Positions 1 to 14,349 of a stretch of 64,000 nt of DNA are shown piece after piece. The stretch is taken from the sequence record KY555145.1. One strand, written 5' to 3'. The number at the start of each line of letters is the position of its first letter. Positions within the stretch are counted from its first letter, which is position 1. Both the position numbers and the translations under genes were made by a program. The notes under the pieces are model-generated. The model was given only the letters and a program-made list of their open reading frames with translations. It was not told the DNA's origin and made no database searches.

Positions 1-2
1 GG

Positions 3-779: not shown

Positions 780-851
780 CGAGGCCCGTTAACCACGTTT
801 GTTAACCTCCGCCGGGGCCTTAACCCTAACACGGCGAGGGTTAACAGGCCA

Positions 852-1005
852 GGGACCCTGGGGAATTAACCCTCCGGGGACCCTTGGAAATCGAAAGACG
901 GGGACCCTGGGCATTTTCCGCCTGGGGACCCTCCAAAATCCACCGTCGGGGACCCTGGGAAATTCATCTTCCGGGGACCCTGGGAAATTCAAAGCCGGGG
1001 ACCCT
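852..1005 (+). repeat. 7 x GGGACCCT at ~24-bp period
   Basis: Starts at 852, 877, 901, 925, 949, 974, 998. Confidence 0.9.
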
Positions 1006-1013
1006 GGCGAATC

Positions 1014-1217
1014 ATGGAGCCGACGATGGCCGGATTTCTCAACCTGATCCCGAACCTCGCGCCGTTCGCGCTCTGGGGCGTCCTGCTCTGGATCGCGGCC
1101 GAGGTCGTCTGGTCGATCAGCCTGTGGGTCTATGGCCTGCGGACCCTGTTCAAGCTGCACCGCGACGATGTGGCCGAGGCCCTGACCCTGGAGCGGGCTC
1201 TGGCACCGTTCGACTGA
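1014..1217 (+). CDS. small membrane protein
   Basis: 67 aa, hydrophobic LAPFALWGVLLWIAAEVVWSISLW. Confidence 0.7.
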   Translation: MEPTMAGFLNLIPNLAPFALWGVLLWIAAEVVWSISLWVYGLRTLFKLHRDDVAEALTLERALAPFD

Positions 1218-1286
1218 CCCAAGTCACAGACTGTAGGTTTCATGACAAGGTGAGATATTTCACAACGATTTCAAGGGCTTATTGCC

Positions 1287-1523
1287 ATGTCGCTCCGCAC
1301 GTTCTTCCACGATCTGGCCGTCCGCTTCGTCGTTTTGGGGTGGATTTTTGCCCAAAAACCCCGAAAAACCCCTCCAAAAGGGCATAATTTTCAGCCCCAT
1401 CCGCCGGCCCAGGCCCGAGACCCGGACGACATCCTGATCTGGTCGATCTCACTCGCGGCGGCGGCCGTCTGGTTCGCGCTCACAGTCAGGCCGATTCGTC
1501 AAGCCATCTCGACCACCGCCTGA
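1287..1523 (+). CDS. small membrane protein
   Basis: 78 aa, two hydrophobic stretches; IWSISL shared with previous ORF (VWSISL). Confidence 0.6.
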   Translation: MSLRTFFHDLAVRFVVLGWIFAQKPRKTPPKGHNFQPHPPAQARDPDDILIWSISLAAAAVWFALTVRPIRQAISTTA

Positions 1524-1596
1524 CCTAAGTCATAGACCGTGGGCTTCGTGACAGGATCACGCTTTCGTTACCGCTCCAGCCCTTGTGAGGCCTCGG

Positions 1597-1701
1597 ATGT
1601 TCGCCTTTCTCCGCCGGCTCAGCCTCGCCGCCGTCCATGGCGCGCTCTGGGCGATCCTGCTGGCGATGGTCGCCGTGGGCGGCCCGCGCCGCGCGCCCTA
1701 A
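1597..1701 (+). CDS. 34-aa hydrophobic peptide
   Basis: MFAFLRRLSLAAVHGALWAILLAMVAVGGPRRAP; GAGG upstream. Confidence 0.55.
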   Translation: MFAFLRRLSLAAVHGALWAILLAMVAVGGPRRAP

Positions 1702-1783
1702 AGCGCCATATCTGACGCATAAGGCCCTCTAAGGCCTCATCTGTGAGACATTCAACGCCCTCGTGTTCCTCTGAACGCGGGGG

Positions 1784-1895
1784 CGTTTTGACGTCGGCGC
1801 GTTTTCGACTTGACGCGCGAGCGTTTTGACGCGGGCGCATTTTTGATTCGACGCGCGAGCGTTTTGACGTCCGCGCATTTTTCAACTTGACGTCG
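1784..1895 (+). repeat. 3 x 38-bp imperfect tandem repeat with TTGACG motifs and T-tracts
   Basis: CGTTTTGACG units at 1784, 1822, 1860. Confidence 0.85.
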
Positions 1896-1920
1896 TTTCA
1901 TTTACCGGGAGCGCCTTAGG

Positions 1921-2110
1921 GTTAACGCCGGCCGCCGAGCCCTGGGGCGATTTACCACCGCAGCGTTAACCTAACGCCTGTTAACCTATCGGTTGTTAAG
2001 GTTAACGCCCCGTTAGGGTTAACGCCCCGTTAGGGTTAACGCCCCTTAACCCTGCGCCCGTTAAGGTTAACGCGCCCCGGCCCCGGCCCAGGCCGCCGGC
2101 GTTAACCTTA
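1921..2110. repeat. GTTAAC-rich cluster with 17-bp repeats (CtrA half/full sites)
   Basis: GTTAACGCCCC at 2001, 2018, 2035; many more TTAAC. Confidence 0.8.
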
Positions 2111-2232
2111 ACCGCCAGACCCCCGCGCCCAGGCCATACCCGGTAGGGCCTGACGGCCCTACCGGGTATGACTCCGCCCCGGCCGGGGCCAGGGACTCGC
2201 GCGGCGAGCCCGGCGCTGATTTGCGCCCCGCG

Positions 2233-2262
2233 TTTACGGTTTGTTAACGTCTGGCCTCTAGG
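2233..2262 (+). promoter_or_regulatory. early promoter with CtrA-type box
   Basis: TTTA-CGGTTTG-TTAA followed by CTCTAGGG. Confidence 0.7.
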
Positions 2263-2311
2263 GTCGCCCTTGTCCCGGCGCGATCCCGCGCCATGCAAGG
2301 AGCCGCCCGCC

Positions 2312-2497
2312 ATGATCCCCGACTCGATCATGAACCCCCGCGACCATTTCCACCGCCTGCGCGAGGAAACCGCCCGCGCTCTGGTCGAGGCCTTCGCCGA
2401 AACCGACCCCGGCGAGGATTACCGCGCCGAAGAGAAGGCCGGCGCGTGGGTTGTCGCCTATTACGACGAGTCCGGCGCTTTCGTCGCCTATCTCTAG
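2312..2497 (+). CDS. hypothetical early protein
   Basis: AAGGAG RBS, 61 aa acidic. Confidence 0.7.
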   Translation: MIPDSIMNPRDHFHRLREETARALVEAFAETDPGEDYRAEEKAGAWVVAYYDESGAFVAYL

Positions 2498-2520
2498 CCG
2501 CCTTCGCCCCTGGCGCCGCG

Positions 2521-2552
2521 TTAACGGTTTGTTAACATGTTGGCGCCAGGGT
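2521..2552 (+). promoter_or_regulatory. early promoter with CtrA box
   Basis: TTAA-CGGTTTG-TTAA. Confidence 0.75.
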
Positions 2553-2595
2553 CGCCCTTGCCCGGCGCCGCCGCGCGCCTTCGGAGAAAAGCCCC

Positions 2596-3399
2596 ATGCT
2601 CTACACCCCCGCCGCTCGCCGCCTTCGCGCCTATCGCGAAACCGCCGCGAAGAACGCCGAAATTCACGCCCGCCCGCATATGGCCGGCAACGTCGCCGGC
2701 TATAACGAATCGGTTTGGCCGACGACGGCGCTAGGCGTCGCCGCCAAGGCCGGCGCCTTCAAGCGCCCCGAAACCGCCGGCAACTGGTCGGAAGATCGCA
2801 AGGCCTATCACGCCCCCGCGTGGCCGGCCGGCTGGCGCGTGCTGGGCACGGCCGAAGAGGTCTGCCGCAAGGAAGGATCGCGCCGGGTGGAACATTCGGG
2901 ATGGTACACGACGCCCGACGACTACAGCGCCACCCTTTCGGGCTATGTGCTGCAAATCCCCGCCCGCGACGGGGTCGCCCAATACGTCGCCGGGGTCGCC
3001 CATAGCGAGTTTGACAGGGTCACCGTCTACCCCTCGCGCCGTTTCGACAACCCGCTAGACGCGGCGAGCGCCGCCGACCAAATCGCCGAACGCGACGCCG
3101 AAGAGGAACGCGAATATCAAAGCGCGTGGCAAGCGGGCGTGCGCTTCGCCGAACTGGGCGCCGAGGTCAAGGAGGCCCGCGCCGAAGCCCTGGCGATCCT
3201 TGGCGAGCGCCGCAAGGTCAAGGGGCTGGAAACCCCCGCCTTGTGCGGCGCGATCCGGGCGCAAGTCGAGTCCTTGCTGGAGAAGATCGAAGAGGCCCGC
3301 GCCAAGCGCGACGCCCTGGCGCAAGGCAATGACCCCGGCCTCATGTTCTACCCCTCGCCGCGTCTGGTCGCGGCGTTCAATGAGGGGGCCGCGTCGTGA
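2596..3399 (+). CDS. hypothetical early protein
   Basis: 267 aa, GGAG RBS, typical codon bias. Confidence 0.8.
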   Translation: MLYTPAARRLRAYRETAAKNAEIHARPHMAGNVAGYNESVWPTTALGVAAKAGAFKRPETAGNWSEDRKAYHAPAWPAGWRVLGTAEEVCRKEGSRRVEHSGWYTTPDDYSATLSGYVLQIPARDGVAQYVAGVAHSEFDRVTVYPSRRFDNPLDAASAADQIAERDAEEEREYQSAWQAGVRFAELGAEVKEARAEALAILGERRKVKGLETPALCGAIRAQVESLLEKIEEARAKRDALAQGNDPGLMFYPSPRLVAAFNEGAAS

Positions 3400-3605
3400 G
3401 GGTCGCCCGCGATAGCTTCGCCGTGTTCTGGTCGCGTCCTGGCCAGAAATGGGGGTTTCACGCCGACATGAAACGGGCGCTTTACCCGACCCCCAAAGCC
3501 GCCGCCGACGCCTTCCGCGTCATGTTCCCGCGTGACGTGGTTCGGAGCGTCCGCGACGCTTCCGGCCGCTTCCTCGCCTTCAAGGAGTCCGCCCCGTGCG
3601 CCTGA
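3396..3605 (+). CDS. hypothetical protein
   Basis: GTGA overlap with upstream stop. Confidence 0.65.
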   Translation: MRVARDSFAVFWSRPGQKWGFHADMKRALYPTPKAAADAFRVMFPRDVVRSVRDASGRFLAFKESAPCA

Positions 3606-3877
3606 TCAGCTACAACGTCAACGGAACCGGTTTCAAGGGCGGCTCTGCCCCGCCCGCCCCATGCCCTGGCCTCGCCGGTCACGCCGACGACGCGGGGCTA
3701 TGGGTTCCCGACCGTGAGACGGTCGCCGCGCTTCTCCCCCGGCGCTGGCGCCACGCCTTCGCCCGCGCGGCGTTTTGGTATGACGCCCGCGACAACAAAA
3801 AGCCTTGCCGCGCCGACCTCTACGACGCGCGCGGCCGGTACCTGACTCAGGTCTGGGCGCATCCGGTTTTCGCCTGA
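3596..3877 (+). CDS. hypothetical protein
   Basis: AAGGAG RBS; terminator follows. Confidence 0.7.
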   Translation: MRLISYNVNGTGFKGGSAPPAPCPGLAGHADDAGLWVPDRETVAALLPRRWRHAFARAAFWYDARDNKKPCRADLYDARGRYLTQVWAHPVFA

Positions 3878-3883
3878 CCAGAC

Positions 3884-3909
3884 GCCCCGGAAAATCTTCC
3901 GGGGCATTT
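3884..3909 (+). terminator. intrinsic terminator
   Basis: GCCCCGG/CCGGGGC stem then ATTT. Confidence 0.55.
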
Positions 3910-3937
3910 ACCTTTTGTTAAGGAATGGCCTCTAGGT
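3907..3937 (+). promoter_or_regulatory. early promoter with CtrA-type box
   Basis: TTTA-CCTTTTG-TTAA ... CTCTAGGT. Confidence 0.7.
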
Positions 3938-3986
3938 TAGCCCTTGCCGCCGGGCAATCCCGCCCGCCGCTTCGGAGTTTCGGCCC

Positions 3987-4505
3987 ATGCCTCAATTCGT
4001 TCTGGACACGTCGGGCCAAGTCGCCCCGCCCGCTTCGGCCAAGCTTTGGCCCTATCCCCTCGCTTGGGATCAACTGAGCCCCTTCGCGCAAGGCTATATC
4101 GAGGCCCTGTTTTTCACCGAATCGTCGCTGGCCTATAATCGCGCCGAATGGTTCGGCGCCGAGTGTCAAGAGGCCTTGGAGGAAGGCACGTCGGGCGGGA
4201 ACATTCCGGGCGACGTCGGGTTTTCCGACCTCGCGCCCGACACCCTCAACCGCATCTTGAACGATTGCGCCCGCTTCCAACGCGAGCACGCCGACACCCT
4301 GGCCAAGGCCTATAACCACGGGGGCGACGCGGGCGACTATGACGAAACCGCCGCCGGCCGTGATTACTGGTACACCCGCAACGGCCATGGCGTCGGGTTC
4401 TGGGATCGCGGCCTAGGCGAGATTGGCGAGGCCCTGGCCAGCGCCGCCCGCTACAGCGAACAAAACGCCTCTTTTGAAGAGGACGGAAAAGTCTACCTCT
4501 CTTAA
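3987..4505 (+). CDS. conserved phage protein of unknown function
   Basis: Motif GRDYWYTRNGHGVGFWDR, recalled from many phage hypotheticals. Confidence 0.8.
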   Translation: MPQFVLDTSGQVAPPASAKLWPYPLAWDQLSPFAQGYIEALFFTESSLAYNRAEWFGAECQEALEEGTSGGNIPGDVGFSDLAPDTLNRILNDCARFQREHADTLAKAYNHGGDAGDYDETAAGRDYWYTRNGHGVGFWDRGLGEIGEALASAARYSEQNASFEEDGKVYLS

Positions 4506-4532
4506 CCTTTTGTTAAGACTTGTCCTCTAGGT
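4502..4532 (+). promoter_or_regulatory. early promoter with CtrA box
   Basis: TTAA-CCTTTTG-TTAA ... CTCTAGGT. Confidence 0.75.
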
Positions 4533-4588
4533 TTGACTTCGCCGCCGGGCAATCCCGCCCGGCGGTCCTCTTCTCAGGATCGCCCCTT

Positions 4589-5641
4589 ATGACCTCTCAT
4601 TCCATGGTTGCGCACCGTTGGGCGCAGGACGACGAGAACGGCCGCACCGCGCGCGGCTTCAACATGTATTTCGAGCGCTACGGACGCGGCGCCGACCGCG
4701 TCAACGTGATTTTTTCCTACGGGACTCACTTCCCGGCCGCCGCCTTCGTGACCGACGCGCACGGCCGCCGCGTGGTCCTCTACACGACGCGCCGCCGGAG
4801 CGTTTCGACCGCGAAACACCTTTCGCATATCCGCTACGCTATCCCGTCGGGCGTGCCGGTGTTTTCCGTGCCGAACGTGTCGCGGATGCACAAGCCGGGC
4901 GGCGCGGGCGACTTCCACGGGGACAACCTGCGCGCCTATATCGAGAGCGCCGCCGGCCTCGCCGAAAAGGCCAAGCGCGCCCGCGTCAACGGCCCTTGGC
5001 TGCTTAGCCAAGCCCGCGACCAACTCGCCGAAGCGCAACGCTACGCCGACGCCTTCAAGGTCAAGGGCTTCAAGGTCCCGGCCTTGGAAGACGTCGCCGG
5101 CCAATGGGCGAAGATGACGGCCGCCAAGGCGCGGGCCGAAGCCAAGGCCCGCAAGGAAGCCGAAAAGCGCGCCCGCGAAGCCCGCGAAGCCGAACGGCTC
5201 GCCGACGCCGAAGCCTTCGCCGCGTGGATGCGCGGCGAGCGCCAGAGCGCCCCGTTTAGCTACCGGGTGCGCGATGACGGGACCGTCTATCTTCGCCGCT
5301 TCCGGGGCGTGGTCCGCGACCTGCGCAGCCAAGAGCGCGACGGCTCGCGCGTCGATGAACTGCAAACCTCGCAAGGCGCGGCCGTGCCGTGGGAACACGC
5401 GGTCAAGGCCTTCCGGTTCATCAAGCTTTGCCGCGAACGCGGCGAGAGCTTCCACCGCAACGGCCGGGTGATTCGCGTCGGACACTTCCAAGTTGACGCG
5501 ATCAGCCCGAACGGGGACATGACGGCCGGTTGCCACCGGTTCGCGTGGGATGAAATCGAACGCATCGCCAGGGCCGAAGGGGTTTTCGACCTCCCCGCCG
5601 ACGCTGGCGCCGTCGAAACCCGGCAAGCCGAACCGGCCTAA
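4589..5641 (+). CDS. hypothetical early protein
   Basis: 350 aa, AGGA RBS; ATG at 4589 preferred to the upstream TTG. Confidence 0.8.
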   Translation: MTSHSMVAHRWAQDDENGRTARGFNMYFERYGRGADRVNVIFSYGTHFPAAAFVTDAHGRRVVLYTTRRRSVSTAKHLSHIRYAIPSGVPVFSVPNVSRMHKPGGAGDFHGDNLRAYIESAAGLAEKAKRARVNGPWLLSQARDQLAEAQRYADAFKVKGFKVPALEDVAGQWAKMTAAKARAEAKARKEAEKRAREAREAERLADAEAFAAWMRGERQSAPFSYRVRDDGTVYLRRFRGVVRDLRSQERDGSRVDELQTSQGAAVPWEHAVKAFRFIKLCRERGESFHRNGRVIRVGHFQVDAISPNGDMTAGCHRFAWDEIERIARAEGVFDLPADAGAVETRQAEPA

Positions 5642-5660
5642 GCCTCCCCGCCCCTCTCGC

Positions 5661-5686
5661 GCCCCGGCTCCCCGCCGGGGCGTTTT
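5661..5686 (+). terminator. intrinsic terminator
   Basis: GCCCCGGC/GCCGGGGC then GTTTT. Confidence 0.7.
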
Positions 5687-5696
5687 CGTGTACGCG

Positions 5697-5728
5697 GTAA
5701 CCTTTTGTTAACTTCTGGCTTCTAGGGT
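5697..5728 (+). promoter_or_regulatory. early promoter with CtrA-type box
   Basis: GTAA-CCTTTTG-TTAA ... TTCTAGGG. Confidence 0.7.
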
Positions 5729-5776
5729 GACTTTCGCCGCCGGGCAATCCCGCCCGCCGGCCAAGGATCGCAGACT

Positions 5777-6076
5777 ATGAATCTTTTCGTTGTCGCCATT
5801 GACCCCGCCCTCATCCCTTCGGCCGCCGGCTTCGTGGTCGCCTCCCCCTACGGGTGCGGCAAGTGGCGCGCGTGCGTCGGGAGCGAGGCGGACATGATCG
5901 CGCTTCGCGACAAGATGCGCCGCGCGCACCCGGCCCCGGAAGGCTACAGCGTCCAGCCCCTGGCGTCGTTCCTGGCCTATCTGGAGACGGTCGGGCAAAG
6001 CCCCTACGACCAGTTTCGCGCCCGCGACGCCGCCGCCCGCATCCTTGACACCCTGACAACGCACCTCGCCGCCTAG
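5777..6076 (+). CDS. hypothetical protein
   Basis: AAGGA RBS, 99 aa. Confidence 0.75.
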   Translation: MNLFVVAIDPALIPSAAGFVVASPYGCGKWRACVGSEADMIALRDKMRRAHPAPEGYSVQPLASFLAYLETVGQSPYDQFRARDAAARILDTLTTHLAA

Positions 6077-6083
6077 TCCCGCC

Positions 6084-6112
6084 GCCCCCGGCCGCGCGCC
6101 GGGGGCGCTTTT
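6084..6112 (+). terminator. intrinsic terminator
   Basis: GCCCCCGGC/GCCGGGGGC then TTTT. Confidence 0.65.
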
Positions 6113-6133
6113 CCCTCGAAAGGATCGCCGACC

Positions 6134-6442
6134 ATGACAACCCGTCTTATCGCCGTGCGCGGCCCGACCGCCGCCGAACTCGCCGACCCGTCCAGCCGCG
6201 CGGGCGGCGCCGAAGTCGTTTTCGAGCGGCGCGACCGCGAAGGCCGCACGCGCCTTGTGTTCGCCGCGACCTGCTACGGCTCATATCAGCAATGGGGCGA
6301 AACCCGCGACGTGCTCGCCGACAACGTCGAGGCGGTCACGCTCTGGGCCGAAGGCATGGCGGCCGTTGCCGCCCTCATCGACGAGAGCGACGACGACGAG
6401 GGCGACGACGCCCCGGCCGAAGATGACGACGGGGAGGCGTGA
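6134..6442 (+). CDS. hypothetical protein with acidic tail
   Basis: AAGGA RBS, 102 aa. Confidence 0.75.
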   Translation: MTTRLIAVRGPTAAELADPSSRAGGAEVVFERRDREGRTRLVFAATCYGSYQQWGETRDVLADNVEAVTLWAEGMAAVAALIDESDDDEGDDAPAEDDDGEA

Positions 6443-6445
6443 GCC

Positions 6446-6865
6446 ATGCGCACAACCAAGGCTCAACGCTTCGCCGCCATCGCCTTTGACGCCCTGGCCA
6501 AGGCCCTAAGCGAGCCGCGCCAAGCCGTCGCCCGCGTGACCAAATGGGAGGGCGCGGGCCATAGCTTCGCCAACCTGCAACGCGATTATGAGCGGTACGG
6601 CCCCGGCGCCCGCTCATGGTTCGGCCGGGCTGAAATGCGCTTCTTTGGGACGCGCCTAGAGGCCGCGCCGCTGGATTTCCCGGCGCTGGGCTGCACCCTC
6701 TTTCTGACCTCCGAAACCCCGCCCGGCGCCGGCCGGGTCTGGACCCTTCGCGCCTATGTCTGGGCTTCGGCCGATATCACCACGCTAACCCATGGCGACG
6801 AAACCGACGCGGCGACCGCGCAAGCGGCCTTTGACCTGCTTTGGCGGGTCCTTTCGCAGCGGTAA
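6446..6865 (+). CDS. hypothetical protein
   Basis: GGAGG RBS; SWFGRAEMRFFGTRL. Confidence 0.75.
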   Translation: MRTTKAQRFAAIAFDALAKALSEPRQAVARVTKWEGAGHSFANLQRDYERYGPGARSWFGRAEMRFFGTRLEAAPLDFPALGCTLFLTSETPPGAGRVWTLRAYVWASADITTLTHGDETDAATAQAAFDLLWRVLSQR

Positions 6866-6893
6866 CCTTTTGTTAACTTCTGCCCGCTAGGGT
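6862..6893 (+). promoter_or_regulatory. early promoter with CtrA-type box
   Basis: GTAA-CCTTTTG-TTAA ... CGCTAGGG. Confidence 0.7.
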
Positions 6894-6941
6894 CTTCTTG
6901 CGGCCGGGCAATCCCGCCCGGCCGCTCAAGGATTGGATCGC

Positions 6942-7214
6942 ATGACCCGCGCTCAAGCCCTCGCCGACATGAACGCCCTTCCCGGTATCATCGCCTCCTT
7001 TGAGCGCGAGACGGGTGAATATCGCGTCACCCTGCGCTTTGGCCTGCTCCCCATGGGGCGCGGCGCCCAAGAGTGGATGCACGCGCGCCGCGAAGCCGTC
7101 GCCAGCTACAGCGACGACAAGGCCGACGCCCTGGCCACCGCCCGCGACATGTCCGCCCGCTGGGAGGCGATGAGCGCCGAAGAGCGTTCGCGCCTCTATC
7201 ACAACCCCGCCTAA
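6942..7214 (+). CDS. hypothetical protein
   Basis: 90 aa after promoter and hairpin. Confidence 0.7.
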   Translation: MTRAQALADMNALPGIIASFERETGEYRVTLRFGLLPMGRGAQEWMHARREAVASYSDDKADALATARDMSARWEAMSAEERSRLYHNPA

Positions 7215-7279
7215 AGCCCCCGCGCCGCCCTGGCCTTCGCCGGGGCGGCTCCCTCAACCCCTCGCAAGGATCGCACCCC

Positions 7280-7564
7280 ATGACCGCCCGTAAGCCCCTG
7301 ACCAAGGAACAAAAGGCCCGCCGCCGCGCGACCCGTCGCGCCGCCCGCCTCAACTGGTCGGATGAGCGCCGCGCCCGCGAATTCGAGCGTCAAGCCCGCT
7401 TCTTCCTGATGATCGCCACCCGCGCCCAAGGCGCCGGCCAAGGCCGGGAAGCCGCCCGCCTCGCCACGGCCGCACAACGCAAGGTGACTAGCTGGCGCAT
7501 GGCGCAAGCCTGCGCCCGAATTAACGCCCTGGCCGCGCATCCTTGGGCGGGGGTCGCCGCCTGA
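7280..7564 (+). CDS. basic hypothetical protein (copy 1)
   Basis: MTARKPLTKEQKARRR; duplicated at 9825. Confidence 0.75.
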   Translation: MTARKPLTKEQKARRRATRRAARLNWSDERRAREFERQARFFLMIATRAQGAGQGREAARLATAAQRKVTSWRMAQACARINALAAHPWAGVAA

Positions 7565-7746
7565 TGGCCCGCCGCGTCCGCTACATGCCGTCCGAAGCTC
7601 TGGACCTCGCCGACGCGCTCGGCGAGGGGCTGGACCTCGTCAAGGCGATGAGCGAGGCCCGCCGCGCGGGCGCGCCGATCGCCGACACCCTCGCCGCCCT
7701 CGAAGACTGGGCTTTAACCGCCGTCAACCTCATCGAAGAGGACTAA
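7564..7746 (+). CDS. hypothetical protein (copy 1)
   Basis: TGATG coupling; duplicated at 10109. Confidence 0.75.
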   Translation: MARRVRYMPSEALDLADALGEGLDLVKAMSEARRAGAPIADTLAALEDWALTAVNLIEED

Positions 7747-7751
7747 ACCCG

Positions 7752-7934
7752 ATGACGCACCCTCACGCCCTGGCGCTGATCGCCCTCGCGGAAAAGGTGT
7801 TGCCGCTTACCCGGCTGCACCCGCTGGACCAACGCGCCGCCGCCGTCGATCTAATCGGCGACCTCTACGCCCTCGCCGACTCCATCGACGCCGACCCGCA
7901 ACCCGCCGCCTTGGCGCAACCGAAGGCCGCCTAA
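7752..7934 (+). CDS. hypothetical protein (copy 1)
   Basis: GAGGA RBS; duplicated at 10297. Confidence 0.75.
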   Translation: MTHPHALALIALAEKVLPLTRLHPLDQRAAAVDLIGDLYALADSIDADPQPAALAQPKAA

Positions 7935-7937
7935 GCC

Positions 7938-8522
7938 ATGACCGCACGCCCGACCCCCGCCGCCCTTCTCGCCGCGTCCGACACCCTGGCGAATTATCTT
8001 CGCGGTTCCGCCTCGCATCGCGCCTATCCGGCGCCGGTTCTCGCCGCCCTCGAAGTGCTCGAAGATGAGGGCGCAACCGGCGCCTTTGAGCGAGGCGACC
8101 CGGACTCCGAGCCGACCCCCGGCGCCCTGAAGCTCCTAGCCGGCATGGTTTCGGCCGCCGCGTCCAATGAGGCCGAAATCATCGCCGCGAACCTGACCAA
8201 ATCGGCGACACTGGCCGAAGCCGTGGCCAGTTATGACGCGATGAGCGATCTTGCCGCATGGCTGGAATACCAAGGCGAGGACGCCGCCGCCGACGAAATG
8301 CGCGGCTATTATCTCCCTCTGGAGGGCGAAGTGAACGCCGCCCGCGCGACGGGGGAAGCCCTCGCCGCCGCGATCAAGCCCGACCCGGACGCCATGTCAC
8401 GTCTAACGCAATCGCTCGCCGAATTCGTCGGACCCTCGCGCGCCCTGCAAATCGTTGGCGAACTCCCCGCCGCCCTCAATGACGCGGACCTGATTCTAGT
8501 CCGCAAGCCCAAGGAGGCTTAG
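7938..8522 (+). CDS. hypothetical protein, variable slot allele 1
   Basis: 194 aa, coupled. Confidence 0.75.
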   Translation: MTARPTPAALLAASDTLANYLRGSASHRAYPAPVLAALEVLEDEGATGAFERGDPDSEPTPGALKLLAGMVSAAASNEAEIIAANLTKSATLAEAVASYDAMSDLAAWLEYQGEDAAADEMRGYYLPLEGEVNAARATGEALAAAIKPDPDAMSRLTQSLAEFVGPSRALQIVGELPAALNDADLILVRKPKEA

Positions 8523-8525
8523 ACC

Positions 8526-9014
8526 ATGCCCCGCGACGTTTCCCGCTTCGCCACCCCTGAAAAGATCATCGGGGGTTACCTCATGACCGCCCAACGCGAC
8601 GGGGCCATGACTGAGGCCGCCGACGTCATCGCCACCCTAGAGGCGGCCGGCTATGTGATCGCCCGCCGCCGCGACGTCTACACCGACTCCGGGGTCAAGT
8701 TGGGCGACGCCCTGGCGGCGCTTTACGACGCCGTTCCTAACTACGCCGTGCGCTCGCAACGGCTCGCCGACGCCCTGACCCCGGCGCGGGATTACGTCTA
8801 TCAACCCCGGTTCCGGGTTAAGTTGGACGCCGCCCCCGGCGCGCGCCTGACTGACTGCGAAACCGGCGCGTGCGTCTATTTCCAGCCCGGTGACGACGCC
8901 GAAGCCTTCCGCGCCCTCTTCGCCCCCTGGCTTCGCGATAACGACGAGACGGGCGACGGTAAGGCCCTGGCCTCGATGATGAACGCCACGGCCGAAGAAT
9001 ACTTTTCCGGCTAA
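8526..9014 (+). CDS. hypothetical protein, allele 1
   Basis: AAGGAGG RBS; homologous to 11078..11656. Confidence 0.8.
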   Translation: MPRDVSRFATPEKIIGGYLMTAQRDGAMTEAADVIATLEAAGYVIARRRDVYTDSGVKLGDALAALYDAVPNYAVRSQRLADALTPARDYVYQPRFRVKLDAAPGARLTDCETGACVYFQPGDDAEAFRALFAPWLRDNDETGDGKALASMMNATAEEYFSG

Positions 9015-9124
9015 GTCATCATTCCTACCGTCTATGACTTGTCACCGGCCGAACTCTTGCCCGGTGACAGTCTGGGCAAGTAAAGCTCACTCTGGATTTT
9101 ATGACTTAGCGCAAAGGATTGAAA

Positions 9125-9199
9125 TTGCTCGAAAAATTCCTAGAAGCTCACAAAGTCGTTTTCTGGCTGCTCTTGCTGGCCTGTTTGTGGCGCTTTTAA
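9125..9199 (+). CDS. 24-aa membrane peptide (copy 1)
   Basis: AAAGGA RBS plus TTG; MLEKFLEAHKVVFWLLLLACLWRF. Confidence 0.45.
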   Translation: MLEKFLEAHKVVFWLLLLACLWRF

Positions 9200-9227
9200 C
9201 GGTTTGTTAACCCCTGGCCCTCTAGGG
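9196..9227 (+). promoter_or_regulatory. early promoter with CtrA box
   Basis: TTAA-CGGTTTG-TTAA ... CTCTAGGG. Confidence 0.75.
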
Positions 9228-9282
9228 TCGAATTCCCGGCGCGGCAATCCCGCCGCCCCGGCCTTCCTTCGGAGCTTCCAAA

Positions 9283-9729
9283 ATGTTCGCTTCCGTGACC
9301 CTTCCCGCCCATGACGCCCAAGGCCTGAGCCTCGAAACCGTCCACATGGTTTTCGCCCGCGAACTGGCGCAACATTTCGACCACGTGACTTCCGCCCCCG
9401 TGGTCGAAAGCTGGACCGACGAGGAAACCGGCGCCGACCACGCGCAAGCCGCCGTCTGCTTCACCGTTTCGGCGACCCCGGCCGCGTGGGAAGCCAAGGG
9501 CGGGCGGCTCGCGCGCCGGCTGGAAAACCTCGCCGCGCGCTATGCCGCCGACTGCGACGCCCCGGCCCTGACTGTCACCCATTGCGACGGGCAAACGGTC
9601 TATGTCGGCGCTCTGGAAGCCCTGGCGCGCCCCGCTCCGGTGCAAGGCCCGACCCGCGACGCGGACCCGGCTTTCCTCCCCCGCCAGCGTGAGGACAAGG
9701 CCGCCCGCTTCGATCGCCTGACCGCCTAG
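9283..9729 (+). CDS. hypothetical protein (copy 1)
   Basis: GGAG RBS; near-identical to 11925..12371. Confidence 0.8.
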   Translation: MFASVTLPAHDAQGLSLETVHMVFARELAQHFDHVTSAPVVESWTDEETGADHAQAAVCFTVSATPAAWEAKGGRLARRLENLAARYAADCDAPALTVTHCDGQTVYVGALEALARPAPVQGPTRDADPAFLPRQREDKAARFDRLTA

Positions 9730-9746
9730 CCCCTGGCCTTCCCCTA

Positions 9747-9780
9747 GCGCACCGCCCCTAGAAAGGCGGTGCGCTTTTCT
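9747..9780 (+). terminator. intrinsic terminator
   Basis: GCGCACCGCC/GGCGGTGCGC then TTTTCT. Confidence 0.8.
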
Positions 9781-9787
9781 GTGTCTG

Positions 9788-9820
9788 TTTACTTGTTGTT
9801 AAGGAATAGCCTGCTAGTGT
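9788..9820 (+). promoter_or_regulatory. early promoter with CtrA-type box
   Basis: TTTA-CTTGTTG-TTAA ... TGCTAGTG. Confidence 0.65.
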
Positions 9821-9824
9821 CTCC

Positions 9825-10109
9825 TTGACCGCCCGTAAGCCCCTGACCAAGGAACAAAAGGCCCGCCGCCGCGCGACCCGTCGCGCCGCCCGCCTCAACT
9901 GGTCGGATGAGCGCCGCGCCCGCGAATTCGAGCGTCAAGCCCGCTTCTTCCTAATGATCGCCACCCGCGCCCAAGGCGCCGGCCAAGGCCAGGAAGCCGC
10001 CCGCCTCGCCACGGTCGCACAACGCAAGGTGACAAACTGGCGCATGGCGCAGGCCTGCGCCCGGATTAACGCCCTGGCCGTGCATCCTTGGGCGGGGGTC
10101 GCCTCCTAA
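9825..10109 (+). CDS. basic hypothetical protein (copy 2, TTG start at the junction)
   Basis: Homolog of 7280..7564; RBS lost. Confidence 0.6.
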   Translation: MTARKPLTKEQKARRRATRRAARLNWSDERRAREFERQARFFLMIATRAQGAGQGQEAARLATVAQRKVTNWRMAQACARINALAVHPWAGVAS

Positions 10110-10291
10110 TGGCCCGCCGCGTCCGCTACATGCCGTCCGAAGCTCTGGACCTCGCCGACGCGCTCGGCGAGGGGCTGGACCTCGTTAAGGCGATGAGCGA
10201 GGCCCGCCGCGCGGGCGCGCCTATCGCCGACACCCTCGCCGCCCTCGAAGACTGGGCTTTAACCGCCGTCAACCTCATAGAAGAGGACTAA
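10109..10291 (+). CDS. hypothetical protein (copy 2)
   Basis: Identical protein to 7564..7746. Confidence 0.75.
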   Translation: MARRVRYMPSEALDLADALGEGLDLVKAMSEARRAGAPIADTLAALEDWALTAVNLIEED

Positions 10292-10296
10292 ACCCA

Positions 10297-10479
10297 ATGA
10301 CGCACCCTCACGCCCTGGCGCTGATCGCCCTCGCCGAAAAGGTGTTGCCGCTTACCCGGCTGCACCCGCTCGACCAACGCGCCGCCGCCGTCGACCTAAT
10401 CGGCGACCTCTACGCCCTCGCCGACTCCATTGACGCCACCCCGCAAGCCGCCGCCCTGGCGCAACCGAAGGCCGCCTAA
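10297..10479 (+). CDS. hypothetical protein (copy 2)
   Basis: Near-identical to 7752..7934. Confidence 0.75.
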   Translation: MTHPHALALIALAEKVLPLTRLHPLDQRAAAVDLIGDLYALADSIDATPQAAALAQPKAA

Positions 10480-10482
10480 GCC

Positions 10483-11073
10483 ATGAACCCGAACCGCTAC
10501 CGCCTCGCGCCCCGCGACCGCTTCAGCCGCGAGCTTGCCGAAACGCTCTATCAGGCGGCCGAAGCCGTCGCCCGCGTGATTCCGCTAGTGCCGGAGTCCG
10601 TCCCCGATGAGCGCCGCGCGCTGGGCAAGGTCCGCGCCGACCTGCTAACCCATAGCGCCGGCGCCCTTGTTCCCAAGCCGCCGGCCGCCGTGCTCGCAAC
10701 CCTCGTTTGGGTTGTCGAGATGGCGCAAGATCGCGCGACCAACGCCGATTTCAACACCGCCCAAGAGGGACTCGACGAACACGAGTCCCTAGCCTTTGTC
10801 GCCGACTGGCTGGAAGCCGAAGGCCAGGACGTGACGCCGATTCGCAACGCGCAACCGTCCGCCGACGCCCTGGCCGAACTCGCCGCCCGTCGCGACGCCG
10901 AACAAGAGGCGCTAGACGCCTTGGAGGCCGCCGCCCTGGCCGAAGCGCCGGGCGACGTGATCACCGAAGCCTTGCGCCCCTATCTGGGCGCCACCCTGGC
11001 CGAAAACCACGCCGACGACGTGCTAGACGCCCTCACGCGCGCCGGCTTCCAAATCACCCGCAAGGAGGCTTAA
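10483..11073 (+). CDS. hypothetical protein, variable slot allele 2
   Basis: 196 aa in the same slot as 7938..8522 but highly diverged. Confidence 0.75.
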   Translation: MNPNRYRLAPRDRFSRELAETLYQAAEAVARVIPLVPESVPDERRALGKVRADLLTHSAGALVPKPPAAVLATLVWVVEMAQDRATNADFNTAQEGLDEHESLAFVADWLEAEGQDVTPIRNAQPSADALAELAARRDAEQEALDALEAAALAEAPGDVITEALRPYLGATLAENHADDVLDALTRAGFQITRKEA

Positions 11074-11077
11074 GACC

Positions 11078-11656
11078 ATGTCCCGCGCCGTTTCCACCTT
11101 CGCCACCCCTGAAAAGCTCATCGGGGGTTACCTCATGTCGGCGGCCCGTCACGGGGCCATGACCGAAGCCGCCGAAGTCATCGCCACCCTAGAGGCGGCC
11201 GGCTATGTGATCGCCCGCCGCCGCGACGTCTTCACCGATGAGGGCGAGAAGCTGGGCGACCTGTTGGCGGCGCTTTATGACGCCGTCCCGAACTACGCCG
11301 TAAGATCGCAGCGCCTCGCCGACGCCCTCAAGCCGGCGCGAGACTACGTCTATCAGCCCCGGTTCCGGGTCAAGCTGGACGCCGCGCCCGGCGCGCGCCT
11401 GACCGACTGCGACACGGGCGCAACGGTCTATTTCCAGCCGGGCGACGACGCCGACGCCTTCCGGGCCGAATTCGCCCCGTGGGTTCACGACGCCAATGTG
11501 ACGGCCGAAGGCGCGGCCCTGGCCTCGATGATGAACCCGACGGCCGAAGAGTATTTCAGCGCCAGCGGGGAAGATGACGACTTGCCCGGCGCGCTTTCCG
11601 CCTTCGATTCCGCCGGCTCCGGCCAAAGACTGGGCTACGTTCGCCCGCCTCGCTAA
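11078..11656 (+). CDS. hypothetical protein, allele 2
   Basis: Homolog of 8526..9014 with a 30-aa extension. Confidence 0.8.
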   Translation: MSRAVSTFATPEKLIGGYLMSAARHGAMTEAAEVIATLEAAGYVIARRRDVFTDEGEKLGDLLAALYDAVPNYAVRSQRLADALKPARDYVYQPRFRVKLDAAPGARLTDCDTGATVYFQPGDDADAFRAEFAPWVHDANVTAEGAALASMMNPTAEEYFSASGEDDDLPGALSAFDSAGSGQRLGYVRPPR

Positions 11657-11766
11657 GTCATCATTCCTACCGTCTATGACTTGTCACCGGCCGAAGTCTT
11701 ACCCGGTGACAGTCTGGGCAAGTAAAGCTCACTCTGGATTTTATGACTTAGCGCAAAGGATTGAAA

Positions 11767-11841
11767 TTGCTCGAAAAATTCCTAGAAGCTCACAAAGTCG
11801 TTTTCTGGCTGCTCTTGCTGGCCTGTTTGTGGCGCTTTTAA
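11767..11841 (+). CDS. 24-aa membrane peptide (copy 2)
   Basis: Identical to 9125..9199. Confidence 0.45.
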   Translation: MLEKFLEAHKVVFWLLLLACLWRF

Positions 11842-11869
11842 CGGTTTGTTAACCCCTGGCCCTCTAGGG
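11838..11869 (+). promoter_or_regulatory. early promoter with CtrA box (copy 2)
   Basis: TTAA-CGGTTTG-TTAA. Confidence 0.75.
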
Positions 11870-11924
11870 TCGAATTCCCGGCGCGGCAATCCCGCCGCCC
11901 CGGCCTTCCTTCGGAGCTTCCAAA

Positions 11925-12371
11925 ATGTTCGCTTCCGTGACCCTTCCCGCCCATGACGCCCAAGGCCTGAGCCTCGAAACCGTCCACATGGTTTTCGCCC
12001 GCGAACTGGCGCAACATTTCGACCACGTGACTTCCGCCCCCGTGGTCGAAAGCTGGACCGACGAGGAAACCGGCGCCGACCACGCGCAAGCCGCCGTCTG
12101 CTTCACCGTTTCGGCGACCCCGGCCGCGTGGGAAGCCAAGGGCGGCCGGCTCGCGCGCCGGCTGGAAAACCTCGCCGCGCGCTATGCCGCCGACTGCGAC
12201 GCCCCGGCCCTGACTGTCACCCATTGCGACGGGCAAACGGTCTATGTCGGCGCTCTGGAAGCCCTGGCGCGCCCCGCCCCGGTGCAAGGCCCGACCCGCG
12301 CGGCGGACCCGGCTTTCCTCCCCCGCCAGCGCGAGGACAAGGCCGCCCGCTTCGATCGCCTGACCGCCTAG
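11925..12371 (+). CDS. hypothetical protein (copy 2)
   Basis: Near-identical to 9283..9729. Confidence 0.8.
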   Translation: MFASVTLPAHDAQGLSLETVHMVFARELAQHFDHVTSAPVVESWTDEETGADHAQAAVCFTVSATPAAWEAKGGRLARRLENLAARYAADCDAPALTVTHCDGQTVYVGALEALARPAPVQGPTRAADPAFLPRQREDKAARFDRLTA

Positions 12372-12389
12372 CCCCTGGCCTTCCCCCTA

Positions 12390-12423
12390 GCGCACCGCCC
12401 CTAGAAAGGCGGTGCGCTTTTCT
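12390..12423 (+). terminator. intrinsic terminator (copy 2)
   Basis: Same stem as 9747. Confidence 0.8.
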
Positions 12424-12430
12424 GTGTCTG

Positions 12431-12463
12431 TTTACTTGTTGTTAAGGAATAGCCTGCTAGTGT
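12431..12463 (+). promoter_or_regulatory. early promoter with CtrA-type box
   Basis: TTTA-CTTGTTG-TTAA ... TGCTAGTG. Confidence 0.65.
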
Positions 12464-12514
12464 CTCCTTGTCGGCGGACGCATCCCGCGCCCGCCCCTCT
12501 CTGGATCGCTCCCC

Positions 12515-12907
12515 ATGGCCCGCCCCTCTGACCTGCTCAACGTCAACGCCGCCCGCGTCCTGGCTTGCCTTGAGCCTATCGCCGCCGCCGCTAAGACGGC
12601 CCCGGCCGCCGACCGCGCCGCCCTTTCCTACCTGCTCGACGCTGGCGAGTATGTCGCCGCGTGGCGCCGCAACCTCACGGAAACCGACCGCCGCAAGGCC
12701 TATGGCGCGGCCTGCGCCGCCGAAGCCCTGGCGCTCGCCAACGCCTATCAGCCCGCCACCCTGCAAGGCGGCGCCGTCCGCCGCGCTCTGGGCGCCTATG
12801 CCGCCGCCCTAAAGGTCCTGCTAGACGGGGAGCCGGTCAAGGCGGTGCGCGCCGCCGAAGGCGCGGCGCTTTCGGTCCGCGCCCGCTACGCCAACACCCG
12901 CCTTTAA
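12515..12907 (+). CDS. Ala-rich hypothetical protein
   Basis: 130 aa, typical codon bias. Confidence 0.75.
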   Translation: MARPSDLLNVNAARVLACLEPIAAAAKTAPAADRAALSYLLDAGEYVAAWRRNLTETDRRKAYGAACAAEALALANAYQPATLQGGAVRRALGAYAAALKVLLDGEPVKAVRAAEGAALSVRARYANTRL

Positions 12908-12935
12908 CCTCTTGTTAACACCCCCCGGCTATGGT
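12904..12935 (+). promoter_or_regulatory. early promoter with CtrA box
   Basis: TTAA-CCTCTTG-TTAA ... GGCTATGG. Confidence 0.7.
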
Positions 12936-12961
12936 CGGGGGGTCGCAAGGAGACACCCGAC

Positions 12962-13156
12962 ATGACCCGCCCCGGCCCCGCCTCGCTCTTGACCCCGCAA
13001 GCCCGCTTCTCGTCGTCGCGCGTCCTGATCCTTCCGGGCGCGGCGCCTATGCCGATTCGCCAGCCGCGCGGCCTTAGCGCCGTCGAGTGCGTCGCCCTTG
13101 GCGTGACGCTGGGCGCGGCGCTCTACCTCGCCGCCCGCGTGTTCGGTCTGGTCTGA
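12962..13156 (+). CDS. small membrane protein
   Basis: AAGGAG RBS; C-terminal hydrophobic helix. Confidence 0.7.
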   Translation: MTRPGPASLLTPQARFSSSRVLILPGAAPMPIRQPRGLSAVECVALGVTLGAALYLAARVFGLV

Positions 13157-13499
13157 CCAGACCCCCGCCCCGGCCCTACCGGTAGGGCCGGGGGTGTGTC
13201 CCATAATGAGACACCCCCCGCCACCTAGTATCTTTTTTGATTCGGAGGGACCCAAAGGCCCCCTACGTTAACCATTTTTCGCGGCGCCCCCCGGCGCCTA
13301 CGGATCATTTTGAAAAATCGCGTTGACAAAACCAGCAATCAACGTCAAGGATCGTGACGTCGAGCAGCCCCGCCCGACACGGGCGGCCCGCCCCCCATTC
13401 GCCGCCCGACGGCCCCATCTCCGACGTCCACCGGGGGTGGGGCCTTTTCATTTTCCAGCCGGGGGACCCAAGGCCCCCTGGCTTTGTAAATCGGACCGC

Positions 13500-13571
13500 C
13501 AAAAGGTCCCTCCAAAAATTTTCAAAACCAGAAACGACAGGTTGACACTTCCAGACTTGGCTTCTAAGTGT
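13500..13571 (+). promoter_or_regulatory. sigma70-type promoter with A-tract UP element
   Basis: TTGACA 13542, 17 bp, TAAGTG. Confidence 0.7.
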
Positions 13572-13602
13572 TGCGCGACGACACGCAATCGAGGAGCCCG
13601 TC

Positions 13603-14349
13603 ATGACCGACGACATCGCCGCCGCCACCCCGCTGACCAAGTTCCAGCCCTACGACTGGCGCGGCTATATCGAGTTCCCCGCCACGCTCGATCTGGCCAA
13701 GCTGGTCCAGGCCGTCTACGCCCGCTCGGTCCCCAAGGGCCTGGGCTTCCTCCACTTCGCCCCCGGCGATCTGGACGAGGGCCGCGTCACCACCGCCATC
13801 TATGACGCCCAGGAGCGCTTCACCGAGGCCGAAGCCCAGTCGGCGCTCGATTTCAACGGCGAACCCCGCGACAGCCGTCACCGCTTCTTCGACTTCGACT
13901 ATGTCGACGGCCGGGCGGTGAAGTTCAACCTCTACCGCGACCTCAACGATCGCCGCTTCTACAGCGAACTCGACTGGTATGACCATTCCGAGTACGACGT
14001 CTTCGATCTGGTCGCCACCCTGCGCGACCTGTCCGATGCCGACACCAAGGCCTATCTTGACGCGGTCGCCGCCGCCAAGGCCCAGAAAAAGGCCGACGAG
14101 TTCGCCGCGACCGAAGCGCGCGCCCTCCTCCTGGTCCGCGCCCTGAAAAACGTCATGGGCGGCTCGGAGACCATCCCCCGCGAGGAGTTCTATCGCCGCT
14201 ATGGCGGCAAGCCGAGCGTCATGTACGCCGCCGACGCCCAGGATCGCCCCTATTTCGACTACGCGTTCAACCGCGACCACACCATTGTCACCGTCCGGCC
14301 GGACGAGGGCGGCGAGACCCTCTACGCCCGCGACGCCGTCCCGGCCTGA
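13603..14349 (+). CDS. hypothetical protein
   Basis: GAGGAG RBS, 248 aa. Confidence 0.85.
   Translation: MTDDIAAATPLTKFQPYDWRGYIEFPATLDLAKLVQAVYARSVPKGLGFLHFAPGDLDEGRVTTAIYDAQERFTEAEAQSALDFNGEPRDSRHRFFDFDYVDGRAVKFNLYRDLNDRRFYSELDWYDHSEYDVFDLVATLRDLSDADTKAYLDAVAAAKAQKKADEFAATEARALLLVRALKNVMGGSETIPREEFYRRYGGKPSVMYAADAQDRPYFDYAFNRDHTIVTVRPDEGGETLYARDAVPA

Follow-up and report, generated by a model that had tools for sequence, protein, structure and literature searches.

In the window analyzed here, the first 64 000 nucleotides (nt) of the genome of Caulobacter phage Ccr29 (KY555145.1, positions 1–64000), most CtrA-dependent promoters of the terminal repeat are followed by a small RNA hairpin of one and the same family. 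Our analysis confirmed that this is a genuine, strand-specific family of covarying leader hairpins attached to CtrA-dependent promoters, both in Ccr29 and in related phages. The hairpin lies at a fixed distance behind the promoter and shortly ahead of the Shine–Dalgarno (SD) sequence. Its role is most likely post-transcriptional, exercised on the very message that carries it. The specific reading that we favor, with a probability of roughly one in three (0.35), is that the hairpin would protect the 5′ ends of the early messenger RNAs (mRNAs), while its apex would additionally be read by a trans-acting factor. As far as can be judged from sequence, the element looks more like a device for the protection or control of early messages than like a lambda-style antitermination site.

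Ccr29 is a relative of phiCbK, and the first 12 kb of the window, which match the Ccr29 sequence at 100% identity, are 80–99% identical to those of phiCbK-type phages such as phiCbK itself, Magneto, Karma, Swift and Rogue. In genomes of this type the first ~10–13 kb are annotated as a long direct terminal repeat, and it is there that the hairpins sit. We defined a CtrA promoter unit as a TTAA-N7-TTAA box, in which one mismatch was allowed, with a TAGGGT-type -10 element behind it. There are 11 such units in the window, at 2233, 2521, 3907, 4502, 5697, 6862, 9196, 9788, 11838, 12431 and 12904. CtrA boxes are strongly enriched (13 observed versus 1.2 expected) and overlap the -35 region, as is characteristic of CtrA-activated promoters. 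The spacing between the box and the -10 element, which occupies unit positions 27–32, is constant in all units. Mascolo et al. (2022) reported CtrA binding and CtrA-dependent lacZ expression for the gp005 and gp018 promoters of phiCbK (PMC9437464). The gp018 promoter, orthologous to unit 9196, was found to be CtrA-dependent by both electrophoretic mobility shift and lacZ assays, and its region, cloned in plac290, supported robust expression that depended on CtrA in cells not infected by phage (PMC9437464). The promoters in question are those studied here, except that the published work covers the DNA sites only, whereas the leader hairpin is added by the present analysis. In phiCbK the gp018 hairpin is located between the promoter and the gene (L001:8871–8904; sequence handle, then position). 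Provided that the plac290 construct contains it, this hairpin does not act as an attenuator dependent on a phage factor.

The preliminary description of the window placed hairpins behind eight of the 11 CtrA promoters, and all eight are indeed present. An exact scan for an [A/G]ATCCC or ATCCC loop with at least four perfect closing pairs gave eight matches on the + strand, seven of them at the claimed sites, and none on the - strand; in first-order Markov simulations the same scan yielded on average 1.7 matches over both strands, with a maximum of 5. The covariance model and the scan of relatives proposed in that description were also carried out. The model (R1), built from 46 distinct hairpin copies, recovered the eight sites in the 64 kb with scores of 29.7–42.5 bits, the next best match (18.7 bits) being a terminator, and covariation was found in the relatives, as detailed below. 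All eight hairpins are on the + strand, and their loops lie 46–52 nt from the start of the CtrA box. Folding energies range from about -12 to -25.5 kcal/mol, with z-scores between -2.2 and -4.5 in seven of the eight. Two pairs of promoters, 9196/11838 and 9788/12431, are copies that arose by a Ccr29-specific duplication; therefore, only seven hairpin sites in Ccr29 are independent. The units that carry the hairpin are as follows.

2233–2264, + strand: promoter of unit 1, with the CtrA box at 2233–2247 (TTTACGGTTTGTTAA) and the -10-like TAGGGT at 2259–2264, an architecture common to all units
2277–2292, + strand: hairpin of unit 1, GGCGC-GAUCCC-GCGCC; 29.7 bits; -12.3 kcal/mol, z -2.7; downstream ATG at 2311
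3907–3921, + strand: CtrA box of unit 2, from the box scan
3946–3970, + strand: hairpin of unit 2, core CGGGC-AAUCCC-GCCCG at 3951–3966, outer stem interrupted by a C.C mismatch; 37.4 bits; ATG at 3987
4502–4516, + strand: CtrA box of unit 3, with the stop codon of the upstream gene inside the box
4541–4566, + strand: hairpin of unit 3, GCCGCCGGGC-AAUCCC-GCCCGGCGGU, 10-bp stem; 41.9 bits; -23.5 kcal/mol, z -4.5; ATG at 4589
5697–5711, + strand: CtrA box of unit 4, from the box scan
5736–5761, + strand: hairpin of unit 4, GCCG.CGGGC-AAUCCC-GCCCG.CGGC, core at 5741–5756, C.C mismatch; 40.6 bits; -17.1 kcal/mol, z -2.6; ATG at 5777
6862–6876, + strand: CtrA box of unit 5, with the stop codon of the upstream gene inside the box
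6900–6925, + strand: hairpin of unit 5, GCGGCCGGGC-AAUCCC-GCCCGGCCGC, 10-bp stem; 42.5 bits; -25.5 kcal/mol, z -4.5; ATG at 6942
9196–9210, + strand: CtrA box of unit 6, whose phiCbK orthologue is the gp018 promoter
9236–9261, + strand: hairpin of unit 6, CCGG.GCGGC-AAUCCC-GCCGC.CCGG, core GCGGC-AATCCC-GCCGC at 9241–9256; 38.1 bits; -17.8 kcal/mol, z -3.0; ATG at 9283
11838–11903, + strand: duplicate of unit 6, with the CtrA box at 11838–11852, the hairpin at 11878–11903 (core 11883–11898) and ATG at 11925
12431–12445, + strand: CtrA box of unit 8, from the box scan
12473–12495, + strand: hairpin of unit 8, GGCGG.CGC-AUCCC-GCG.CCGCC, a pentaloop variant; 30.0 bits; -14.6 kcal/mol, z -2.2; ATG at 12515

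The other CtrA promoters of the window lack it.

2521–2579, + strand: CtrA promoter without the motif; the hairpin GGCGC-CGCCGC-GCGCC (2564–2579) has a different loop and is as stable as shuffled sequences (z -0.13)
9788–9827, + strand: CtrA promoter copy that lost its hairpin at the duplication junction and is fused at the predicted start to the TTG-initiated copy of an open reading frame (ORF) of 94 amino acids (aa)
12904–12943, + strand: class-II CtrA promoter, with an inverted repeat (ACCCCCCGG / CGGGGGGT) around the -10 element and without a leader hairpin

The Ccr29-specific duplication is a tandem one and comprises ~2.6 kb of the terminal repeat (7270–9800 versus 9826–12420). At its junction (9826), the copy of the 12431 promoter, cut at the 5′ edge of its hairpin, is joined to codon 2 of the 94-aa ORF. 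A TTG thereby replaces the ATG at the predicted start, possibly producing a leaderless or silent copy of the ORF.

To place these hairpins in a broader context, the terminal-repeat regions of 16 other phages were compared and every CtrA-box unit was listed. The family hairpin occupies the same position in 81 of the 157 units of 14 genomes (Shapirovirus, Poindextervirus, Colossus and the Brevundimonas phage Bajun); the raw loop scan counted 83, including two false ACCCC matches that were excluded. Across these genomes the loop starts 46–52 nt from the first base of the box, most often at 50. The dominant loop is AAUCCC (52 copies), followed by AUCCC (18), ACUCCC (5), ACUUCC (4), GAUCCC (1) and ACCCC (1). 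Thus, the near-invariance of the loop, as seen in the window, needs to be relaxed: AAUCCC clearly prevails, yet in the relatives the loop is not strictly invariant. The inner stems come in several versions (GGGC/GCCC, GCGGC/GCCGC, GGCGC/GCGCC, GGCGGCGC/GCGCCGCC and GGCGG/CCGCC, with GAGGC/GCCUC in Bajun), and the outer stems vary further.

Covariation was assessed using an alignment (A1) of 46 distinct copies from 14 phages, which share a helix of 10 pairs. In this helix 82% of the cells are paired, compared with 36–52% if the partners are slid by 1–3 columns; this number should be read with the caveat that the copies were chosen for at least three pairs beside the loop and that such GC-rich sequence pairs at 66% even after shuffling, although the outer seven pairs, which were outside the selection, are still 61–87% paired. 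Cells in which both partners have changed number 71 versus 32 ± 3.6 in column shuffles. Compensatory changes are present in nine of the 10 pairs, and none of 500 shuffles reached the observed covariation score. The compensating stems around a conserved loop, first noticed in Ccr29, are therefore borne out by the relatives. The conserved core reads G-C, C-G, A, (N), U, C, C, C, G-C, C-G. Within it, A15, U17, C18–C20 and the two closing pairs are 90–100% conserved in three phage genera. Most copies also have the stem interrupted by a C.C mismatch or a bulge three to five pairs below the loop. When model R1 was run on 303 kb of relatives, it returned 74 matches, all on the sense strand; 73 of them follow a CtrA box, and the remaining one is a weak additional match. 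The same scan gave no matches in phages CcrSC, Marchewka and Gurke.

The position of the hairpin within the leader is just as regular. Since the -10 element is at unit positions 27–32 and transcription would begin 6–9 nt further downstream, the start is predicted at positions 38–41, usually at the G of a conserved YTTG or TTCG. The hairpin cores begin at positions 39–45. By this placement, the hairpin would be the first thing transcribed, preceded by few or no unpaired nucleotides. Its 3′ arm ends 2–22 nt before the SD sequence (GGAG, AGGAU or GGAA), leaving the latter free, and 17–35 nt before the start codon. The sequences flanking the hairpin show no conserved columns on the 3′ side and only a weak (70% or more) YTTG tendency on the 5′ side. 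The C/U-rich 5′ flank is probably upstream of the start site. An outer helix between this flank and the SD sequence was considered and rejected as a specific structure, since flanks pair equally well with their own and with other SD sequences (-6.3 versus -6.2 kcal/mol, permutation p 0.25).

Promoter, hairpin and SD sequence together make up a cassette of ~90 bp, which has been copied ahead of most early operons. In phiCbK the cassettes at 3980 and 5178 are near-identical over 64 nt. Because some copies within the same genome are this similar, the uniformity of the cassette is in part a result of recent copying. Nonetheless, the apex is common to cassette subfamilies with quite different promoter spacers. 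At some promoters the AAUCCC hairpin is replaced by a different one. The gene at 6942 of the window is preceded by the AAUCCC hairpin in ten phages, while BL57 (BL57:6879) has GGGCGGGGG-AUCG-CCCCCGCCC instead. In Colossus, seven promoters have GGGCGGCGG-AUCGG-CCGCCGCCC as the alternative, and three have GGCGGGA-CGG-UCCCGCC. Such replacement at orthologous promoters argues that selection acts on the presence of a stable GC-rich hairpin where the leader begins. The number of hairpin 'flavors' is small.

These properties are consistent with the following scenario for our favored reading, 5′-end protection combined with a reader of the apex. Host RNA polymerase together with phosphorylated CtrA (CtrA~P) would transcribe pre-early mRNAs from the phage terminal repeat, and a cis-acting stem-loop would form their first ~25 nt. 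Since hardly any nucleotides, or none, would be left unpaired at the 5′ end, it would block 5′-end-dependent decay, that is, pyrophosphate removal and the subsequent entry of RNase E. As a result, messages produced during the short CtrA-active period of the swarmer cell would persist. The invariant apex (the closing G-C and C-G pairs plus A(N)UCCC) would be read by a trans-acting factor that tunes either stability or translation.

Stem-loops at the very 5′ end are established mRNA stabilizers, the leader of E. coli ompA being an example. The phage element resembles stabilizers of the ompA type in that a stable hairpin would lie at, or only a few nucleotides from, the predicted 5′ end and leaves the ribosome-binding site (RBS) free. 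Moreover, it is conserved through compensatory change, and other hairpins substitute for it at orthologous sites. It differs in being a repeated cassette tied to the promoters of a single transcription factor, and its effect on half-life is predicted.

Several observations weigh against this reading. A plain, passive stabilizer needs no conserved loop, yet here the loop and the closing pairs are 90–100% conserved in sequence, and across genera. The transcript start is placed by inference, to within about ±3 nt. In Marchewka, a phage of a Brevundimonas host, CtrA promoters are numerous and have short leaders without structure. TTGACA-type promoters behind arrays of CtrA boxes, again with unstructured leaders, are found in Gurke and the Caulobacter phage CcrSC. 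In Bajun the motif is present at only one of ~20 CtrA promoters. Since the leaders of Marchewka, Gurke and CcrSC are unstructured, the hairpin is not generally required. Nor does CtrA-dependent transcription as such depend on it, as Marchewka and Bajun indicate.

The conserved apex would also fit with an operator, and we regard this as the closest, though tentative, alternative, with odds of perhaps one in four. Here, a phage or host RNA-binding protein would read the apex and switch the early class on or off through translation or targeted decay. Consistent with such a role, the G-C/A(N)UCCC/G-C apex is near-invariant on variable stems, and in most copies the C.C mismatch or bulge recurs 3–5 bp below the loop. 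The genes marked by the element belong to a single temporal class. Its distance of 17–35 nt from the start codon would put it at the 5′ edge of the region covered by a ribosome, given the commonly quoted footprint. The same block even encodes a candidate binder, a conserved Arg-rich protein of 94 aa predicted to form a helical hairpin.

7280–7564, + strand: 94-aa early ORF with an Arg-rich N-terminal helix (KEQKARRRATRRAARLNW), a speculative candidate for the hairpin binder; second copy at 9825–10109

On the other hand, the candidate could be detected only in 26 phiCbK-type genomes and in neither Colossus nor Bajun, both of which have the motif. In addition, units of similar appearance were seen on one bacterial chromosome and in elements unrelated to these phages, which favors a host factor over a phage factor. 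The statement of the preliminary description that the RNA element is recognized by a protein can be retained in part: given the invariant core, it is reasonable to infer a trans-acting factor. Coordinated translational control or decay, the other role suggested there, is plausible as well. Early messages of phage T4 are also controlled post-transcriptionally, by RegA repression and RegB cleavage, though not via a shared hairpin. The T4 gene 43/RegA sites and the MS2/PP7 operator share with the phage hairpin the small size, a conserved loop rather than a conserved stem sequence, and the potential for one protein to control a gene or a gene class after transcription. However, those sites overlap the SD sequence or the start codon, whereas the phage hairpin ends 2–22 nt upstream of the SD sequence.

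The look-alikes outside the phiCbK group come from pattern scans of IMG/VR and genomes requiring a CtrA box and GCAATCCCGC; among the matches listed, most are due to chance. A strict version of the pattern returned only known phiCbK-type isolates from IMG/VR. Three loci nevertheless have features not imposed by the search, namely, a long stem, a -10 element at positions 27–32, and an SD sequence and ATG shortly after. The first (L327:8045–8961, metagenome contig FRDC01001212.1) holds a pair of divergent CtrA units, and in both the AAUCCC motif is on the sense strand of the unit itself. One stem is CGGGGC/GCCCCG; the other, CCCG.GGC/GUC-CGGG, includes a G.U pair. Since the motif flips with the direction of transcription, a role at the level of RNA, or at least a transcription-oriented one, is favored. 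The second (L228:3150–3240) is a chromosomal intergenic region in a metagenome-assembled genome of Acetobacteraceae (CAIRCM010000157.1), with a 12-bp stem around AAUCCC (z -5.5). The third, in a prophage-like contig (L135/L198; L198:9815–9895), has an imperfect box, a 6-bp CCGGGC stem and a small hydrophobic ORF downstream.

The occurrence of such units in unrelated elements hints that the reader is encoded by the host, with the proviso that the sample is small and the searches are biased by design. Extending this idea, the AAUCCC hairpin could be the RNA half of a two-part 'CtrA cassette', whose apex would be read by a host RNA-binding factor conserved in Alphaproteobacteria, giving the CtrA regulon a post-transcriptional layer. 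Its adoption by unrelated phages and by some chromosomal genes would then have been independent. We consider this speculative, giving it about one chance in five.

As for the surroundings of these loci, the L327 hairpins are just ahead of TTATGGAG-type RBSs, in a phage-like region with terminase-like ORFs and arrays of CtrA half-sites; no protein relationship between this region and phiCbK was detectable. The L228 unit precedes a small hydrophobic ORF and is flanked by a GMC-oxidoreductase-like gene and a gene for an ABC-transporter binding protein. In the metagenomic sequences L324, L325 and L328, GGGGCGGGGCAATCCCGCCCCG plus a U tract can refold as a terminator, GGGGCGGG-GCAAU-CCCGCCCC. The sequence GGCAATCCCGCC is thus found also in unrelated hairpins.

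Antitermination of the lambda N/boxB kind was among the roles initially suggested for the element. In this case, a phage protein bound to the nascent hairpin would make RNA polymerase resist the terminators of the block. We find this possible but unsupported, and rather unlikely. As in the lambda nut site, where N binds boxA plus boxB, we are dealing with a short stem-loop that has a small conserved loop and directly follows the promoter of an early phage transcript, in a block that contains terminators. One of these terminators is even within an operon.

6083–6107, + strand: strong intrinsic terminator, the only operon-internal one, followed by genes 6134–6442 and 6446–6865 that have no promoter of their own

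This terminator has 10 G-C pairs and a weak U tract, is situated between genes 1 and 2 of the operon transcribed from the 5697 promoter, and is conserved in phiCbK, where it is annotated at 5566–5590, between gp009 and gp010. However, of the six strong + strand terminators in the first 14.5 kb, the other five are at operon ends, directly ahead of the next promoter, so that read-through would be needed at one terminator at most. Besides, the hairpins occur once per promoter (8–12 per repeat) at the extreme 5′ end, in contrast to one or two nut sites per genome located further downstream. This frequency makes read-through largely unnecessary, and whether a unit has a hairpin shows no correlation with whether a terminator follows. 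The loop (AAUCCC or AUCCC) is not a GNRA-like pentaloop. A search for boxA (CGCTCTTTA-like; YGCTCTTTAAC, at most two mismatches) gave 15 matches versus 12 expected, none of them adjoining a hairpin.

When ten early proteins were compared with Pfam and PHROGs, only families of unknown function were matched, one of them with DUF7447, and no N family was found. The conserved N-terminus of the 94-aa ORF, KEQKARRRxxRRAARLxW (KEQKARRRATRRAARLNWSDERRA), is Arg-rich and ends in Trp, which we take to resemble the RNA-binding motif of lambda N; this presumed likeness serves as a lead, not as a test. The ORF matched no Pfam family or N-type protein, and its best sequence match in PDB is not significant (E 0.56). 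It is predicted to fold into a two-helix hairpin (pLDDT, the predicted local distance difference test score, 87), unlike the disordered N, and Foldseek retrieved only generic helical hairpins (E > 0.7). Overall, these results leave the lambda N/boxB interpretation unsupported.

Base pairing of the loop is still less probable. In this scheme, UCCC would act as an anti-SD seed, either in cis, as a pseudoknot with its own GGA(U/G), or in trans, with 5′ fragments titrating G-rich RBSs. Indeed, every loop contains UCC(C), and roughly half of the SD regions that follow have the sequence GGAU(U/C), with 4–5 nt complementary to (A)AUCC. There is also a precedent in Caulobacter, the small RNA (sRNA) CcnA, whose CCCC loop binds GGGG near RBSs (PMC8959179). 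UCCC-motif sRNAs and Loop A of CcnA (PMC8959179) have in common with the phage element an exposed UCCC or CCCC loop, a context linked to CtrA and complementarity to G-rich RBS regions, yet the phage loop is part of an mRNA leader, not of an sRNA, and the covariation expected with a target was not found. In particular, the loop and the SD sequence do not covary (behind AAUCCC, GGAG occurs 15 times, AGGA 16 times and GGAA four times), and for this reason the loop–SD pseudoknot was rejected. Furthermore, GGAUCGC-type sites also precede genes that have no hairpin (6120 and 7263 in the window), only 3–5 bp are possible, and complementary (antisense) partners of the loop do not occur in the window above chance.

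The least probable of the alternatives, a DNA-level element such as a protein-binding site or an extruded hairpin just past the start, for example, an operator for shutting off early promoters, could explain the fixed distance from the promoter and has a parallel in a second promoter class with a covarying inverted repeat around the -10 element that cannot form in its own transcript, but a dimeric operator would conserve the arms and not an asymmetric center, whereas here the arms vary with compensation, and in the divergent L327 pair the motif is oriented with transcription. The presence of G.U pairs argues only weakly against DNA: the asymmetry between G.U and A.C (20 versus 6) was discarded as proof of RNA, being uninformative in view of the similar bias predicted from base composition alone.

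Some other analogies were also discarded. An ANTAR substrate, as outlined in PMC3369931, consists of two tandem hairpins with hexaloops that have A at position 1 and G at position 4; the phage element is a single hairpin with C at loop position 4. The analogies with FlbT, aconitase/iron-responsive elements and ANTAR lacked sequence-level support.

The leader hairpin is apparently undescribed, being new to Rfam and to two key phiCbK papers. Ranked by E-value, Rfam gave four weak matches in window positions 1–14000, all below the gathering scores and none at a hairpin. The report on CtrA-dependent promoters (PMC9437464) makes no mention of a hairpin, stem-loop or secondary structure, and the phiCbK genome paper (PMC3556154) none of a hairpin, stem-loop or inverted repeat. 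In research on the Caulobacter cell cycle, phiCbK serves as the standard phage. The description of its CtrA-dependent early promoters is recent. A second conserved signal, carried by RNA and located right behind these promoters, suggests that early expression is probably controlled at two levels. The common apex would offer a single handle by which the whole early class could be switched, stabilized or destroyed. If the loop reader is indeed a host protein, it could expose a post-transcriptional arm of the CtrA regulon. The ~90-bp promoter–hairpin–RBS cassette is also a compact expression module.

In class-II CtrA promoters, represented in the window by 12904–12943, an inverted repeat flanks the -10 element, which is thereby placed in the 'loop'. 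Members of this class were also observed at L006:6258, L007:9939, L010:4277, L012:20039–25634, L202:26415 and L202:39325. Their arms covary (GACCTCCCGG/CGGGAGGTC, GACCCCCTGG/CAGGGGGTC, GACCCGGCC/GGCCGGGTC and GACCTCCCCC/GGGGGAGGTC). Because the 5′ arm is upstream of plausible start sites, this structure could form only in DNA or in RNA reading through from the upstream gene.

Other repeats are present as well. Three arrays (840–1010, 1780–1890 and 1920–2110) lie between a terminase fragment and the first early promoter; they are of the GGGGACCCTGGGAAATTC type, the GCGTTTTGACG(C/T) type and a type made of tandem GTTAACGCCCCGTTAGG units built of CtrA half-sites. Finally, an AT-richer non-coding region of ~180 bp with an inverted repeat (GTCACCGGCCGAA...CCCGGTGAC) precedes the 9196 promoter (9014–9195) and has been duplicated together with it (11656–11837).

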